From Klebsormidium nitens (lineage: Eukaryota > Plantae > Klebsormidiophyceae): 64,000 bases of DNA. Location of the stretch: the NCBI GenBank assembly GCA_000708835.1, contig DF237133.1, positions 93,215 to 157,214 of the forward strand. Reading direction: 5' to 3'. The translations under genes were made by a program, and so were the position numbers. Shown in pieces: positions 45,601 to 59,353 of this stretch. Every line of letters starts with the position of its first letter. Position 1 is the first letter of the stretch. Under the pieces are notes generated by a model, which ran no database searches, was not told the DNA's origin, and saw only the letters and a program-made list of their open reading frames with translations.

Positions 45601-47117
45601 ATTTGGAATTAGACATTGTGTTACTTCGGTATGGCAGGCGTCAAATGGGGAGGTCGTTTTCAGCACCTCTCATTGCGCTGAGCAGACCTTTGGCAGCTAA
45701 ACTCGGAACTTCTGGCGATAGAGGTTGTCAATGAGGTGCATCAGAATTGCCCGGATTGCTAGACCAACTTGTCAAAGCCAGTCGATGTGAGTAAGTCATC
45801 TTCGTCGACTATCAACCGTTAGGGCATTGGTACCGCAAGTGATCAAAGCTGGCTAGCTTTGCATGTGAAGGCAGCTCTAAATCCGGTGGTCTCTACACTC
45901 TAGAAGTCCTAGAAGAAATGACACTTCAGGAATAGTAAGCTCAAAGACTAGTAAGATCACTAGCATGGGACGGGTTACGGGATATTCTGGGGTTTTCTAG
46001 GCCGGTGGGTACGGGTGCGGAGCAGGTAGATTTTTGTGTTTGAGCTTACCATTCATTTGAGCTTACTATTCCTGAAGTGTCGCGACTCCATTGGCAGTTC
46101 TAGCCACGCGGGAACGCGCCCGGAACGCGGCCGCAAAATCTTCGTCACAAGTGCCAGCCCAACCAAGCTGCGTGTGTTCAATGTTTTGAGACATCATGAG
46201 CGGTCACTTGGGTCGGAGGGACTCAACCCCACTGCACAGCGGCACATCATGCGCATGGGCCATGGTGGGTCAGGGGTCGAGTAGATTGGTCAGTGACCTT
46301 GGTTGGACTAGGATTGGCCATAATCACTTCATTTGATTGAACATGCCTTCTCTCAAGTACCTGTTGAGTCAACGAACATGTATATTGCTACACGCGTTTG
46401 CAGCGGTATATTAGGCATCTTATCACTCCTTGCTCGACTTTTACTACTCAGCGCTATAATTGATCTTTGCGGCGGGGTAGATAGCAATGGAGAGGCAATG
46501 GACCGTCGCCGACGCATGATCTGAATACGGCTGCAGTCTCACGTACGAAGTTGCAGTCCCGTTGTAGTTCAGCGTAGCATTTTGAATGCTTACGAGCCAA
46601 CGCAATTCTTGAGTTCCTCAGTAGCGCGTTCGCAGAAGTCTGGCCCGCGGCACTGTTGCACCGCGTCAACCAATCTACCTTCCATATTCCAATCTGGATA
46701 AACATGAAGATTGGATGATGTGGACCGAATGAGATGCTTCACAACCTTATATCTGCGGGTTCTCAGGCTTGGCCAGATTGGGAACCCGCTGGATATTCGA
46801 CCGATCATGGACAAACGAACCTTTTATTTCTGAAAATTGCCGCTCGCACGGAAGTAGCTGACGAACTGTGTGATTATACCCCCCTTATTAGTACCTTCTA
46901 TGAATGTTCCGTCCCGTCGGATCTCGCGTTTGCTACATCCCTAAGGCGCAACATGCTCGACTTGGGCGCTCCAGCACCCCTTGCAGGTGCGCCCCATCCT
47001 AGTCTCTGCACCACGATTAGGAGGATCGTAGCAGTAGTTCCTTACGACATTTATGATACAGTTGACTCGTTAGAAACCGCATCGACGACGACCTCTTCCT
47101 ATTTAAGTGACAGAGAA

Positions 47118-49884
47118 TCAGGCGGCCATATGATGGCCGCTCATATTCAGTGCGAGCGGACGCGGCGAGGCGGTCGTCTTAGCGTCGGCCCCGCTTTCTC
47201 GATCTCGCCGCTCTCGTTCTCGCCGGTACGCGTCCACCCGCCGCTCTTCCTCTTCCCGCAGCTTGTGATTCAAAGCGTAGATCTCGGCCCTTCGCTTCTC
47301 TCTGCAATGGTCCAATGGTCAGAGACTCGCACTGGCGCAATGACGTCCAGGTGGGAAACGTCTGCTCTTCCCCAGGCAATGCGTCGGGCGACTGGGCAAA
47401 CAGCTAGATGGGCCGAACTAATATCTAGAGTTTTTCCTCTTAGGAAAAGATAGAATTGGTTTTGTCCGAATCCAACTCCCATTGCAAGAGCCGACGAATT
47501 TAGATTCCCTACCTACAGAAGGAAGTAGGATCGGATGCTACGCAGGGAACGTCATAGAGGGGCACACGCCCGGGCCATCGAGGGCCGACTTCATCATGAC
47601 GCACGGGGAAAAGCATCGTGCTTCTTCGCCAATCACTGCGGACGTCAGCACAAACGGTCAGCAACGCTCACTTCAGTTCGAGCGCAGTCTCGCGCCGCCT
47701 CCGCTCCTCTTCCCTCTTGGTGTCCTCCAGCCGTTTGGCCTGAAAGGAGAGAAACGTCGTAAGTTAGCTAACCGTACTTACTCAACCGTTAACCCTTAAC
47801 CGTAGCTTAAATGGCCATGACTTCCTTGTGATTCTTCATGTACCCCTGCCCAAAAGTTGACCACTCACTTACGCCTCGATTCCAGATTTGACGGGCAATT
47901 TTTATGTGCAGCTTCATTGACAGGCTGAGGGTGAGTATGACGTAGCCACGGATAAGTGAAGTAAGGACAGCGCCAGGACCACACAAGAAAAGAAGGAAAA
48001 GCAAGACCGTCTGCCTTGTTGGACAAGACGGAACAGAGCGGAAGAAGGGAGACTGATATGGCACATTGCACAAAATGGATTGAGCGAAGCAAAGTACAAA
48101 CAACCGCGCAGCGTTCCCACCTTGAGCGCGCTCGCCTCCTGCTCCGCCCGCCACTTCTCCAGCCGCAGCTGCGTCGCGCGCTGCAGCGCCTCCGCCCGCG
48201 CCGCGCTCTCGGGCGAAGTGGACGGGCTGCCCGCCCCGGTCTCGCCCTCAGCCGGCAAGCTCAGCGTGGAGCTCCTCCTTGCCCCCCTGGGGGGATCCCT
48301 CGGAATCCCACCAGTGGGGCTCAGAGCGCCCCGGGGGCTCAGCGTTTTCTGGGGACTTTTAGGCCCGGGGGGGCTCATAGTGCCAGAGGGATCAGGGGAG
48401 CGTTTCGGTAGCGAGGCTAGGTGCAATGGTTGTGGGGTCAGAACGCCCCGGGGGTGCTTGGTAGGAGACGTTCCGGGATGGTTGGGGGAAGCCACGTGCA
48501 TGCGAATGCCCGGGGTTTGCGCCCGGGGCTTCGCTTCGGCAGCCGGGGACAGGGGCTGAGAGCTCACTGGGACAGGTTCGGGTGTACGGGGCTCTGAGGT
48601 TGGGTTCCGTTTGGCTGGTACCTTCATTCGGGCCTTTGCTTCAGTTGTGAGCGACGACATCCTTGGCGAGAGTGGGGCCTTTGCGGCAGTGTCGCCGGCG
48701 TTGGACGATGTGTTTGATTTCCGAGGATTCGCCTTCTGAGATATTGACGACGCTTCGCTTGGTGACTTAGCGGATGCACGTGGCTGGCTTGCCAACTCTC
48801 CCCGTAGTGATGCTTCTTCTCCCAAGCAATCGCTGGAGCGTTTATCACACGAAGCAGCTGAGGAGGCATCTGATTCCCTTGGGTTAGCAGTTTTGGAAGT
48901 AGCATGGGGTCCCGGCAAGGACCGAGACCGGGCCGTCCTGACTGGCGGGCTGAGCCTTGGCGAGCATGGCGGACTTGAGATCCTTCCCGTAGCTTCTGAA
49001 CCCTTTCGCCTACTGTTTAGAGAATTCGACCTGGGAGGCCGTAAAGTCTTCTCTTCCCTGACCAACGAAGTGCTGCGCCGCAGAGGACTTATGGGATTAT
49101 CTTTCAGGCTAGACTTCAGGGATTGTGGAGAGGTTGATGTGCATGATGGGTTGGAGCCTGTTTCTAATTGACCAAGCCGAGCAGACTCTGACTGGTGAGA
49201 ACTTCGATAGTCTACTGCTGAGCTACCTAATCTTGCTTTTGATGGGCCTGGTACTTGGGTACTAGTACTGGAAGCAGATTCCCCCTCTGCAACGTCCCCT
49301 TGGGAATTCATGGGTCTCCTACACAATTGCTCCTCAAGACCAGTGACCAGCTTTCCTGAGACAACTGCAGGACCGTTAGACCCGGTCTCTGCTTGCTCTT
49401 GAGGAACAGTGGGTCCAGTGTGCTTATCTGAACCGGCATACTCCTGGCTGTTCCCACCCTTTGCTTCCTCTTGCACGCCCGCAGATGTGACCCCATCTAT
49501 CAAACTCCTCGCCATGACGGGGGTCCCGGAGGCCCCTAAAAGAAAAGTGTCCTGACCGGTTTTTGACACCGCTGCCAACCCCTTTGCCACTACATCTGCA
49601 AGACAGACCGCATTCTGTCTCCCCCCTGCCTCCCCAGTTGGCCCCCTCTCCTTTCCACCTGCTGCCTTTTCAATCACAAAACCAGCCCCATCAAGATCAG
49701 CCCCAGAAGGACTCTTTCTCACTAAATGGTCCATCTCAGCTGGAAGACTTCGCCTGCTTTTCCTTCTGCCAGGAGAAGAGCTGGGGCAGCGAGCTGGTTC
49801 ATGTGCCGAAGCTGGTGAAGGGAAGGGGGAGCTGAGTCGCCTGACAGCGAGGGGGGCGCTCCTGCCCTGGAGCTCAAGCTTCTC
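47118..49884 (-). CDS. Long Ser/Pro/Arg-rich disordered protein with a C-terminal SVBP (CCDC23)-like helix; exons 49884-48121, 47739-47672, 47301-47118 (671 aa); 5' exon(s) unresolved
   Basis: ORF 47914..49734 extends in frame up to a TCTTCCTAG acceptor. ALK|GTGGGA, CAG|AKRLED...ELK|GTGAGC and [20 protein letters not shown] splice in phase (0, 2). Confidence 0.72.
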
Positions 49885-51047
49885 CTAGGAAGAGGATGGG
49901 AGACAGAAAAGAGCCTTTCTATTAATTCAGATCTAAAGGAGACTTTCAGGTTAAGGTACTGGTGTCTGCAGTTTAGGCTTGAAATGCCAAGATCCTTTCA
50001 GAAGAATTCAGGGAGAGTCTAATCATAGCTCTTGCAATGATATAAGGCTGCGTACTGCTCTTAAATGCTGTCTACTCAATGCAGCTACAGCCTTGATGTA
50101 TGCGGTGATGCGATTCTCAGTCTTCAATTGGATTCAACAGCTCAAGCCAGTCTGACCCAGAATCCGGAGATGGCTAAGTTTATCTTCATTCAGGCTATGA
50201 CAGAAGAGGGCTTGTAACGATCTTCGTATGCACCTCACCATGTAGTATCCTTCGAGTGCCGCTGTCAGGCCGCTGACGTTCTCAAGCAGGCTTCAGCATG
50301 AATTAGGGTTTCGGCAGTGGCCGTTGCTCCAGCTTTCTCAAACGAAGGAGCGGAGCAGATTCGCCCATTAAAAGATAGGGTTCTAGAAATTAAACGAAAA
50401 AATTCTAGAGGATACAGCGAGGACTTTGCTCCGCATTGCTATGCAGGTCGTGAGGGGGTTGTGCAGCTTCTTTTGAAACCAGTTCACTTTGAAGTTTGAG
50501 CATCCACAAGAGCCACTTGAAGTTGAACTTGAAGGCACTTGAAGTTGGAGGCCAAGCTGCGAAAACAGCTAAAGTATCGATGTTGCCGATCCGTCGTCGA
50601 AATTCTACATCGAAGTATCATCCAGGATACCACTATGGCGCCGTGGTTGTTGGGACGATTGATCACTCGACACGCTTCGACGACGATACGAAACCGTATT
50701 GAGGAAGCGTGATTCGACAATTCGGAGCGCTTGCTGCTTCTTCCTGCATGGAAGCACGGGCCCAGGCCCAGGCCCCAGGGCATACCCAGACTCTAGAGCT
50801 AGGTATTTGCGCCCTGTTCTTTGAATCGGAGCCAGAGTTGGCTTTTCTGATCACCCCTCAGGTCCTTTCTGCAGATTGAAAGCATTCTCCGTTGAATATC
50901 TCCATCGCGCATGCTTGCGAGGATACTAAGCGGGGATAGTGGCAGCTGAGAGCAAGGGGTTTTCAGAGATTGGTCATGGCTGGCAAGTCGCTGCTGCTGA
51001 AGTCATTTGGACAGCAATTATAGGCCTGATCCTAGCCGCCTGCATTG

Positions 51048-54000
51048 ATGGAGGCTAGCGGGGTCCAAAGAGGGCCCCCAGCCGGCTGGCTGCAGAGCTT
51101 CCTAGCCTCGGCATCTCGAGTGAAGGTTTATGGTGCATCGGATGCTCGCGAGCTTGCCCCTACCGATGAAAGCCTGCCAGTGCTGGCCAGGGGAAACAGC
51201 GTGTCAAGTTCAAGGTCAAGCACTGGGGAAGAGCAGGTATGTTTGAAAAGAAGGGTTGCAGATGTGAATGCGAAACCCCAAGCTGGAATGCCGTGCTCTT
51301 CAGCGATGAAGCTTCAATATGGGTCTGCATCCCTGAACTTGCATTTGTAGGGATTGAGGCACCTAAGCAGCTGATGAAGATTTTGAATGTGCTGAAAGTG
51401 AGGTTACAGCAACTGTGCATCTCGGATTAGTGGACTCAACACTGTCAACGACACCTTACATGAGTGTTGTCCATTTGGATTCAAATCCAGTCGCTTGGAA
51501 GGATCGAACCCTTTACAAATGTAAGCTGGACGGATGAAATCAGATGAAGAGATGGGAGACGATGGCTGCTTGCAGATACTAGCGCTTCCTGGACACACTG
51601 ATAACAAAGGCACACTTTTGAACCGCCCGAATACTCCAACATTTTCACCACTTTGGATGCTGCATCTTGAGCCCTTCGCCCTTGCATGGTACCGTAGACA
51701 TGACTTAGTCACCATCCATGTTCTACGAGTATCGGCCAAAAGAGCTGATTTTTCAATACAAAACAAGTGCAAGCTTCCCCCTTCAATTCTGCATCTGAAA
51801 GCTGCCTTCTCCATCCTAGTGCATATCCCCTTCAACCTGTCCATGTTAGGCAGACAAACCGAAGCTGAACACTAGCCCTCCTTCTGCAGGCAATCGCAGT
51901 CGACTCTCTCGCCACTCCCCGTCCATCTTCCAAAGACTCCCTTACACGAAGACTTGGCCCATGGGACCTCACCTTACTAGGCATCGGCGCGTCTATTGGG
52001 TCGGGGATCTTTGTCGTGACGGGCGTTGCCGCTCGGCAGGCTGGCCCAGGTAGAGCTCAACCCTTTTCTGCCCCCACTCAGTTTTCCTTTTGGGAGTTTG
52101 TGTCTGGCCGAGCTTGCCTCAAGACTCTGTGTCACATGTGCTGGCATGCTTCGCTCCCCTGCAGGCTTCTTCAAATCTGCTATGGAGGTGATCGGATATC
52201 TGTGCCAGTAGATGTGTCAGCTAGTGCGCCAGCTTGTGACCAAGTTTTGCACTGCCTTCAGTTTGGCTGCTTCCACCCTGGGGTCCCAATTAAACAGTAG
52301 GGGGGCACTTTCACAGATTTCGGTTAGCTCCACCCTTGTGAACGCAACCCCCCTCTTTGCTGTTGAGAACTACAGATCTTATCCCCCTTGCTTTCTGATG
52401 ACAGTACGCATCTTCTCCCGCATGTCTCGGTCGGACAGCGCTCACTCCTCTGGCCCACAAGGTTCAAGGCCTCAATCTCACTTGATATACCCACTTAAAT
52501 CCAAACTTCTACAAATTTACGTTACGGACCTCAACGTCTTCATTCCCTGGGGACTCACGTACCTCGCAGCCTCATACCCCCCCCAATCTGATCGAGTTTC
52601 GGATTTCACACCCCCTGCAGCTGTGGCCCTCAGTTTCCTGCTCGCTGGGCTCGCCTCCGCCCTCGATGCGCTGTGCTATGCTGAGCTGGCGGCTCGCTTC
52701 CCTGCCCTCGGCTCCGCTTACCTGTACACCTACCTCACGTTCAGCGAGCTCCCCGCCTTCCTCGTCTTCTCACACCTCATGTTCGACTACCACATCAGTG
52801 CCGCAAGCATCGCACGAAGGTGGGAAGATTCTCCTCTCTTTCTGCGTCTATGTTGTGTATTGCATTTTGCTTGTCTTGGATGACGATCTCGAAGCTTGCG
52901 GTAGCAATCTGTGAGTCTTAATCTGGCAAGCTTTGTCTTCCCAAATGACGAAGTCGAGGTTCTCGAACGCTGCCCTAAAATCCAGCCATCCTTAGCCTCT
53001 TTGATCTTGGCCTTGCTTTTGAAGAAGGCTGGCCAACAGGACGCGAATCTCTGGCTCATCATTTCTCTGCTAAAAATTAACACACCCCAACTGCGGCTCT
53101 TTCCTTCGTTAAGGCGACCACGCAGACACTCGGGCCCTTGACTGCTTGCTTTCAAGCGTCCGTCGGCGATTGAACAACGCAGTAGTCCGGAGCTTATTCG
53201 CGAACAAAAGCAACCACCTCGACCTCCGAAACTCCTCATGATGCTTGTTCTGCGCCATATCTCTGCTGAACACACGCCTTGACCTAGGCGCTCGATTGAA
53301 GCGAAAATCTCTTCACACGGCCCATCGTGGCACTCTCGCTGAAGCTCGTCGTATTGGTGCAGTCTGGCGGGCTACACCGTAAAGCTCCTGGTGCGGATTC
53401 TGCCCTTCACGGCGCCGTACATCCCGCAGTGGCTGGCCGGCGGGGGGCTGTCGCTGCTGGGGGGCCTGCTCTCGGTCAACTTCCTTGCGCCGCTCATCTT
53501 GTTAGCTCTCACCCTGCTCCTCTGTCAGGTGAGGGGAAAACGGATGCAAGTTGGATGTGGTGGAAAGGGAGCCCGGCTGAAAGTGGTACAGATGCTCCTT
53601 CCGAGGAGCTCAGTCGCTTGGAAGTTGAACGTACTCCAAAGGCAACGTCGGAGGAGGTCAACCGCTTAAAACTTCGATCGTGGCTCGAAGAGGACGTCGG
53701 CGAAGCCACGTGCTTGGACCTTGAAAATTTACACGGATGGCAACACAATGGAAACTGGCGAAGCTCGGATGGTCCGACGGCTTCCGTCAACGCAGTAAGA
53801 CAATTGGTACTGGGGGTTCATCACGTCTACCTCAAGAAAGCAACCGTCCTTCTTGCGACAAAAGTGCCTCCACCGCGCTCGCCAAAAATCTCGCAAGAAT
53901 CCCGGGTACCTATCGCCCATTGAGGTCCATCGCTTCCGGTTTGAGTCCCCTTCCCCTTCTCCTCTTCTCCCGGTACATCTCTCGGCTCACATTCACAAAA

Positions 54001-58014: not shown

Positions 58015-59353
58015 CTAAACTCGCAGTGCCCTTGCAGGAGCATGTATCGAGCTAGCTCCTGCGCGTCGCCTGGCTTTTGACTGCTCTTCATCCGGACTGC
58101 ACAGGTCTACAAAGCACCGCAGCATTCGCTCTGCTAGAGAGTCTTGCCGTGGCGGCACTCGAGGCTCTGCTGGCGGCCTTGGAGGGTGCCTTGATGTGGC
58201 TGACTTTTTGGGTTTCAAGGAGGGATCGAGAACGTTGGGAAGGTTCTTGACGGGCTTTTGACAGATTTCACAAGTCCTGGAGATGAGATTCGGAAGGTGT
58301 TGTGAGAAGTTGCAATCTGCGGCAGGAGACATAAGTCCAAAGGGAAGCATAATATAGATAGCACAGCCAGCGTAGTGAAGAGAGAGGGGCGTACAGTGGC
58401 CGCACAGAGAAAAGCAAACTGCTCGACAGTCTAGATTCAATTGATGTCCACAAGTACCAACGAAATTTCGTTCCAAATTGTGGCCCAGTAATGTCCCTTT
58501 GGGCAGAACAACTCTCAACCACTGGCTTCAGTTGGTTCATTCTGGATCAGTTTTCACGGATCAATTGGAAAGTGATGAGCTGGCCTCTGCTTGCACTTGA
58601 GCTGTTTGGCTGTATCAAATGTGGCTTAGTGCAGACACCAACTCTGCATCACTGCAAAGGACACCACCAGAAAGCATGTGCACAAGAAGCAACCTGCCTA
58701 CTTTGGCGACTGACAATCTCTGAGCTGGACAATGAGACAAGACTCTAAATCGAAACCAGGGCCCACCTGGTCTGTTGATAGGAGAACCACAGGAGTGCGC
58801 ACTCGCTATGCATGATTGCCAGCCCCTTGCTGTGGCAACCGCAATCCAAGACCAACATCTCTGAGGCTGTAACCTCACAGTGGCAAACCCTACAGATTGA
58901 GGGAGCTACATCTGCCAGCGTATTCCCACCATTGTCTTCCTGGTTTCTGTCAGCACACTCAGGTTCTGATGGCTGTTGGACTGAGCTGTTGAAGCCGCTG
59001 CCTACTTGAGCCTTGCATTGAACATTGCTGGAGTCTGAATGAAACTCCTTCTTGCTGGAGGACTCTTTCGGAGAGTCGCTGGTTTGCTTCACACGCCCAG
59101 GAGATTGTACAACCCAATTAGGCGCCCCTTGAGAATTCTCCAGGAACAGAAAGGGGGTGGTCTCCAATACCCTCACAAGCTGCTCTAGTGCTCTCTGCCA
59201 GTACCCCGTCTTCACGCCTTCCCTTCTGGTTAGCTTACAAGAAGGGACGTTGATTTTCTGAGAGGCGGCGCTCAGACAGCTTGAAGCATACTTCTGGTTT
59301 GCAAACGAGCAATCGGCGGTGCTTGGCTGAAAAGGCAAACCGATTGCATCCAT
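58015..59353 (-). CDS. RING-CH (RINGv, C4HC3) zinc-finger protein, putative E3 ligase; exons 59353-58767 and 58276-58015, 5' end uncertain
   Basis: CRVC...CGC...HSEC...WF in exon 1 is completed by TCEIC after a phase-2 intron (ACCAG|GTGGGC ... CTCCAG|G). Confidence 0.8.

Follow-up and report, generated by a model that had tools for sequence, protein, structure and literature searches.

Does a streptophyte alga carry a homologue of SVBP (CCDC23), a protein known from animals, as the terminal helix of a much longer disordered protein, and what would such a helix serve there? The question is raised by a gene of Klebsormidium nitens located on the minus strand (50528 to 46809, four exons) of a 64,000-nucleotide (nt) stretch of contig DF237133.1 (GenBank assembly GCA_000708835.1, positions 93,215 to 157,214), which we call the window and to which all coordinates refer. 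A preliminary description of this DNA, made from its letters, had rightly taken the source to be a streptophyte alga and had proposed that an SVBP-like helix is fused here to a long basic region. We estimate at roughly 60% the probability that this is an expressed gene for a long disordered chain with an SVBP-homologous helix, which serves the vasohibin-type tubulin detyrosinase of the alga.

Splicing and homology of the C-terminal helix

The RNA evidence consists of contigs from four transcriptome-like runs of four different studies, probably made from vegetative cultures, mapped over positions 46600–52400; these contigs give no expression levels, and minor isoforms may exist. The joint 47301/47672, which the preliminary description had predicted, is seen in all four runs, and the joints 47738/48120 and 49883/50238 each in three of the four, all of them with GT..AG borders on the minus strand. 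Some single RNA contigs run from the long second exon into exon 3, and one covers exons 4 and 3 together with the long exon, which places the long protein and the helix on one mRNA.

Intron 3 (47302–47671; 370 nt, phase 2) interrupts the SVBP-like motif within the K codon of ELK. Exon 3 (47672–47739; 68 nt) encodes AKRLEDTKREEERRRRETALEL plus the first two bases of that codon and ends at 47672 with GAACTGAA, followed by GTGAGC, while, after TTGCAG, exon 4 opens at 47301 with A GAG AAG CGA AGG GCC GAG ATC TAC. The main part of the SVBP-like core, as delimited by the alignments with Pfam CCDC23 and with solved SVBP chains, occupies 47226–47301, the ELK start lying at 47672–47680. In the coding part of exon 4 (47118–47301), a disordered tail comes after the core, and the frame closes with TGA (47120–47118). 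A protein search with the long exon retrieved the public gene product KFL_001840210 (protein P0001 in our set), a “hypothetical protein” of 508 amino acids (aa) with no Pfam domain on record. It already joins the last three exons, and its C-terminus is exactly the joined SVBP-like peptide; the expectation that annotation would miss a motif split by an intron was thus mistaken, and the gene had merely been left unnamed. Searches and folds that needed joined exons used the public proteins P0001 and P0003.

Joined in phase 2, the spliced peptide is identical to human SVBP at 14 of 28 residues, including RAEIYALN; this count, already given in the preliminary description, holds against the SVBP sequence from solved structures. 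CCDC23 (PF15674) is the sole Pfam family matched by P0001 (E 4.6e-5, 23.7 bits, profile positions 7–58 of 63). Amongst the 177,635 sequences of our solved-structure set, which includes 13 distinct SVBP sequences, the 13 best matches of P0001 are all SVBP (best E 1.5e-5, SVBP residues 8–61). Exon 4 alone gave weaker values, with E 0.003 for Pfam CCDC23 and about 0.1 for the SVBP chains. Word searches of 5.8 billion proteins with the long exon, the C-terminal region or the 76-aa helix returned the gene's own product or nothing, the E-value scale of these searches being too severe for a match of 30 bits.

A search of 1.84 billion representative proteins with the C-terminal 104 residues yielded two relatives: a metagenome fragment of 99 aa (E 2e-13) and Mv00727 of Mesostigma viride, 319 aa long (E 4.6e-4). 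The fragment derives from two Klebsormidium-like metagenome contigs (L001 and L002), which contain the entire orthologous gene in the same three coding exons, with equal positions and phases of introns 2 and 3, the introns being longer and unrelated in sequence. Identity between K. nitens and these two orthologues amounts to 37–38% in exon 2, 91% in exon 3 and 62–65% in exon 4, within which the helix is nearly unchanged. The ratio of non-synonymous to synonymous substitution rates (dN/dS) between the two is 0.63 for the long exon as a whole and falls to 0.24 over the final 100 codons of that exon; exons 3 and 4 together give about 0.28. A pattern scan of metagenome contigs with the alignment of four sequences described below detected four more loci (L003–L006; 67–75% GC): two intron-less open reading frames (ORFs) of 529 and 548 aa (L003 and L005), which carry the helix in frame with a long N-terminus, an ORF of 347 aa (L006) and a fragment (L004). 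In these loci, a Pro/Ser/Arg/Ala-rich N-terminus precedes the SVBP-like core, which is followed by (L/I)(L/M)RE near the C-terminus. Mesostigma viride, two Klebsormidium-like genomes and GC-rich eukaryotic metagenome contigs thus share with K. nitens one architecture, in which an SVBP-like helix closes a chain with a long disordered N-terminus.

Mv00727 matches CCDC23 by itself (E 9.5e-6, 26 bits, profile positions 3–61), as well as SVBP chains (E 2.7e-4). A profile of four sequences, i.e., K. nitens, Mesostigma and two exon-4 fragments (P0002 and P0004) of the Klebsormidium-like relatives, found SVBP amongst the solved structures at E 1e-9, the next match being at 0.9. With six sequences (K. 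nitens, Mesostigma and four metagenomic relatives; alignment A4), the profile matched all 13 SVBP sequences (best E 1.9e-10), and up to E 10 no other sequence appeared. Five of these six sequences match CCDC23 and no other family, and the alignment of the algal helix covers nearly the full SVBP chain (residues 5–60). A look-alike search with a protein language model, which we regard as a lead only, placed CCDC23-bearing clusters from Oomycota, Chordata and Rotifera at ranks one to three (scores of 0.80–0.82). Because the profile matches SVBP exclusively and Mesostigma matches independently, the proposed likeness is real: judged by sequence comparison, the C-terminal helix is truly homologous to SVBP/CCDC23, and the K. 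nitens gene encodes an SVBP-domain protein rather than a canonical small SVBP.

In the crystal structure, SVBP contacts VASH1 through Q35, R36, E38, I39, Y40, A41, L42, N43, V45 and L49 (PMC6937246). Invariant across the six relatives are, in human numbering, K32, R36, E38, I39, Y40, L42 and N43, and all of these except K32 belong to the ten named contacts; the polar network and I39 are kept in every relative. K. nitens is identical to human SVBP at R36, E38, I39, Y40, A41, L42 and N43. At position 45, Mesostigma and the metagenomic relatives have L or I and the Klebsormidium lineage has K; L49 is kept in none of them.

AlphaFold2, run on residues 395–508 of P0001 with alignment A4, predicts a single helix at residues 2–96 of that segment (block-mean predicted local distance difference test score, pLDDT, of 86–98 over the helix), followed by a disordered tail. 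The helix so predicted is continuous, has about 95 residues (P0001 396–490) and corresponds to 47175–48210, introns included, and the SVBP-homologous part is its last third. Some 35 residues before the SVBP core, the helix has a second motif, A.QR.A..RL..WR..Q, common to all relatives and absent from animal SVBP, and its middle, between this motif and the core, consists almost purely of E, R and K.

The chain that the helix terminates is basic and disordered over about 590 aa, close to what the preliminary description had proposed. Exon 2 (48121–49884) is an open frame of 588 codons, spanned end to end by one RNA contig, and encodes a low-complexity sequence rich in Ser, Pro, Ala and Arg that is predicted to be disordered; the Atlas gives the model of this annotated product a mean pLDDT of 0.45 (P0001). 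Its product has an isoelectric point (pI) of 10.2 and a net charge of +29, with 16% Ser, 11% Pro, 1% aromatic residues and 25 SP/TP sites, and the 140 residues adjoining the helix reach a pI of about 12. The basic composition is maintained in the orthologues although the sequence diverges.

Possible roles of the helix and of the disordered chain

By analogy with SVBP in animals, the helix would dock into the alga's vasohibin-type tubulin detyrosinase through its invariant R-x-E-I-Y-x-L-N face, and its docking would stabilise the enzyme or activate it. A contribution to localisation or to phospho-regulation would come from the long N-terminal region, which has the SP/TP sites together with two conserved RxxSxP motifs and might also touch the acidic surface of microtubules. 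The docking is suggested by three published observations: vasohibin is recorded across the green lineage, from green algae through bryophytes, with Micromonas, Volvox, Physcomitrella and Selaginella among the genera named and K. nitens not among the species listed (PMC4866520), Klebsormidium flaccidum has flagellate zoospores and retains ciliary genes (PMC4736243), and disruption of VashL (Cre05.g241751) in Chlamydomonas reinhardtii causes a strong drop in detyrosinated tubulin as well as disturbed intraflagellar transport (PMC11770126).

Several observations weigh against this reading. A search of the spliced protein with the CCDC23 profile, which the preliminary description had named as its own check, gave a significant E-value, but the score falls short of the Pfam gathering score of 27 bits, an operational cut-off and not a biological feature. 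This holds for all the sequences searched (19.5–23.7 bits in K. nitens, 25.1–26.0 in Mesostigma and 14.7–17.6 in the metagenomic relatives), although CCDC23 is the sole or top family each time despite these values. Charged residues abound in the helix region, and such a composition inflates the similarity of one helix to another. K. nitens has K, E and R in place of V45, L49 and Q35, by which part of the animal interface is lost. The Pfam search with the long exon, up to E 10, returned no family, including no microtubule-binding repeat or domain. Finally, the VASH of trypanosomatids is an autonomous detyrosinase that needs no SVBP, and no SVBP homologue was found in those organisms (PMC11761321), so a VASH can lack the cofactor.

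The mechanism put forward in the preliminary description, in which the Ser/Pro/Arg-rich region would itself bind microtubules in the manner of a microtubule-associated protein (MAP) and tether the detyrosinase to the lattice, appears doubtful to us. It was based on composition alone, and the likeness of the region to MAPs of the tau/MAP2/MAP4 type is indeed one of composition only (basic, rich in Ser and Pro). The charge and high pI of the region, most extreme beside the helix, suit such a tether, and it is the basic composition, not the sequence, that the orthologues retain; moreover, in animals, VASH itself attaches to the lattice by tails that are basic and disordered, according to work cited in PMC11770126. 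The empty Pfam search argues against it, basic SP-rich disorder is also common in nuclear and RNA-binding proteins, and the dN/dS of 0.63 implies little positional constraint in the long exon.

A true SVBP homologue could also have changed its job: the helix may bind another partner or act as a stiff single alpha-helix spacer, the protein being a phospho-regulated scaffold. The replacement of V45 and L49 by K and E in the Klebsormidium lineage would fit such a change, as would the second conserved motif upstream that animal SVBP lacks, the E/R/K-rich middle of the long helix and the expression of the gene in what probably were vegetative cultures. However, the invariant residues are those that form the polar network with VASH1, a pattern that is hard to keep without the same partner, and Mesostigma and the metagenomic relatives hold a hydrophobic residue at position 45; we therefore consider a changed job unlikely. 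That the resemblance to SVBP arises by chance or from the composition of a charged helix, with no homology, is very improbable, since the sub-threshold single-sequence Pfam scores, the empty word searches on their strict scale and the very many windows scanned for the preliminary description are outweighed by a six-sequence profile that is exclusive for SVBP, by the independent match of Mesostigma, by an alignment over nearly the whole SVBP chain and by a core conserved amongst distant relatives whose flanks have diverged.

A vasohibin domain (PF14822) was found by Pfam neither in the SVBP-like gene nor in the ten longest ORFs of the window. A vasohibin domain hidden in the N-terminal region of the protein was considered and rejected, given the lack of a Pfam match, the low-complexity composition and the poor conservation of that region.

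Gene model, conserved islands and neighbouring genes

The public gene model takes out an in-frame stretch of 492 nt (48833–49324) as an intron (GTGTAG..CTCCAG), and 164 codons are consequently missing from P0001. Contigs of all four runs cross both borders of this stretch without a joint. As the stretch is kept in the RNA contigs, the main product amounts to 1 + 588 + 83 = 672 residues and not 508; the annotated KFL_001840210 is thus probably 164 residues too short. A rare spliced, exitron-like isoform without 48833–49324 may also exist.

Exon 1 (50239–50528) consists of a 5′ leader that ends in the annotated start codon ATG (50241–50239), the contigs extending to 50488–50528. Four upstream ATGs in this leader (50503, 50436, 50368 and 50299) open short upstream ORFs before the annotated start; they may imply translational control, or a start farther downstream (Met at 49734). 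Intron 1 (49885–50238; 354 nt, GTGAGG..TCCTAG) has its joint in three of the four runs and is also present in unspliced contigs. Exon 2 ends at 48121 with ..GCGCTCAAG, followed by GTGGGA of intron 2 (47740–48120; 381 nt, phase 0), the joint of which is likewise seen in three of four runs. Low-depth contigs read unspliced through intron 3 (47272–47701) and intron 1 (49856–50267), indicating intron retention or pre-mRNA in the runs. The 3′ untranslated region covers 46809–47117, with contigs extending to 46809–46916.

Within the long exon, the alignment with the two Klebsormidium-like orthologues (alignment A2) contains three conserved islands. An N-terminal motif with an RxxSxP site, LELQGRSAPLAVRRLSSP (49825–49878), is nearly invariant in both orthologues, with the consensus LELQGRSAPL.VRRLSSP; a second island, SSPPCSPRLSPPVRTARSRSLP (48913–48978), lies in the middle of the exon (consensus SSPPCSPR.S..VRTARS.SL), and the third is the stretch that runs into the helix. 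The RxxSxP sites RRLSSP (49825–49842) and RSRSLP (48913–48930) are thus found inside the best-conserved islands of a fast-evolving region. RSRSLP fits the RSxSxP pattern of mode-I 14-3-3 sites, and, judged by their motifs, both are candidate phospho-dependent 14-3-3 sites.

Within the interval 50528–50800, a far more highly covered gene begins on the plus strand, about 190–270 nt away from the first exon of the SVBP-like gene. It has exons at approximately 50715–51232 and 51886–52049 or beyond, separated by an intron (51233–51885, GT..AG). Lying head to head, the two genes may be driven by one bidirectional promoter. Farther downstream, the ORF 52212–52880 has a weak match to amino-acid permeases (E 1.8e-5). 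Two long ORFs on the minus strand belong to unrelated neighbours: 16008–17429 matches F-box-associated leucine-rich repeats (E 7e-11) and 58748–59353 a RING-variant domain (E 4e-5). In the metagenome, the SVBP core of the relatives on L003 (124–1713) and L005 (61–1707) is preceded by a helical motif that occurs in repeats (EEILEFQQQAQCRVL.. and EEVVAFQRRAKARLSDWRRVQ), and the neighbour of both, in tail-to-tail orientation, is an ACSF3-like malonyl-CoA synthetase gene.

Known detyrosination systems and the possible age of the partnership

Animal SVBP (CCDC23, PF15674; 66 aa) and the algal protein share the single helix with the core LK..R.EIYALN and the 14 identical residues of 28 described above. 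In contrast, the K. nitens product is about ten times longer (some 672 aa), the helix being placed at the C-terminus of the basic disordered chain; the helix itself extends over about 95 residues, has the extra conserved motif upstream and is charged at V45 and L49. Mv00727 of Mesostigma viride resembles the K. nitens protein in its disordered Ser/Pro/Arg-rich N-terminus, followed by a helix with QREEIYSLN. It is, however, shorter, its helix is followed by a longer acidic tail, and Q35 as well as the hydrophobic character of position 45 are retained.

According to the legend of Figure S1 in PMC11770126, Chlamydomonas Cre05.g241751 is a large locus that aligns to both human SVBP and VASH2; going by that legend, enzyme and cofactor may share one gene in this alga. 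As far as the legend describes it, the Chlamydomonas locus and the K. nitens gene thus have in common a large green-lineage protein with a stretch alignable to human SVBP, but, unlike that locus, the K. nitens protein has no vasohibin domain detectable by Pfam. The search of the representative proteins with the C-terminal segment of K. nitens, described above, did not return Chlamydomonas VashL at E ≤0.001. Trypanosomatid VASH, for its part, shows that a tubulin detyrosination system is present in flagellate protists. Our literature search found no paper that links vasohibin with Klebsormidium, and the papers found on SVBP in an alga concern the Chlamydomonas locus only.

A broader possibility, which we advance tentatively, is that SVBP in streptophyte algae and in the eukaryotes behind the GC-rich metagenome contigs forms the C-terminal docking helix of a disordered protein that is long, basic and phospho-regulated, and that this protein acts as a targeting and regulatory subunit of the tubulin detyrosinase. 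If so, the partnership of vasohibin and SVBP would predate the split between plants and animals, and the 66-residue SVBP of animals would be a trimmed-down remnant.

SVBP is usually seen as a small animal cofactor; the algal gene indicates that it is not confined to animals, and a clear homologue in streptophyte algae, which branched early, pushes its origin far back. The finding also supplies the unnamed gene KFL_001840210 with a name and a testable function, mends its public model and places the poorly described VashL locus of Chlamydomonas in context. The constant attachment of the algal SVBP helix to a long basic disordered chain provides a natural experiment on how a detyrosinase is targeted and regulated, for example during the formation of zoospores or sperm. 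The algal protein suggests that this pair of enzyme and cofactor is much older and more varied than the small SVBP of animals implies.

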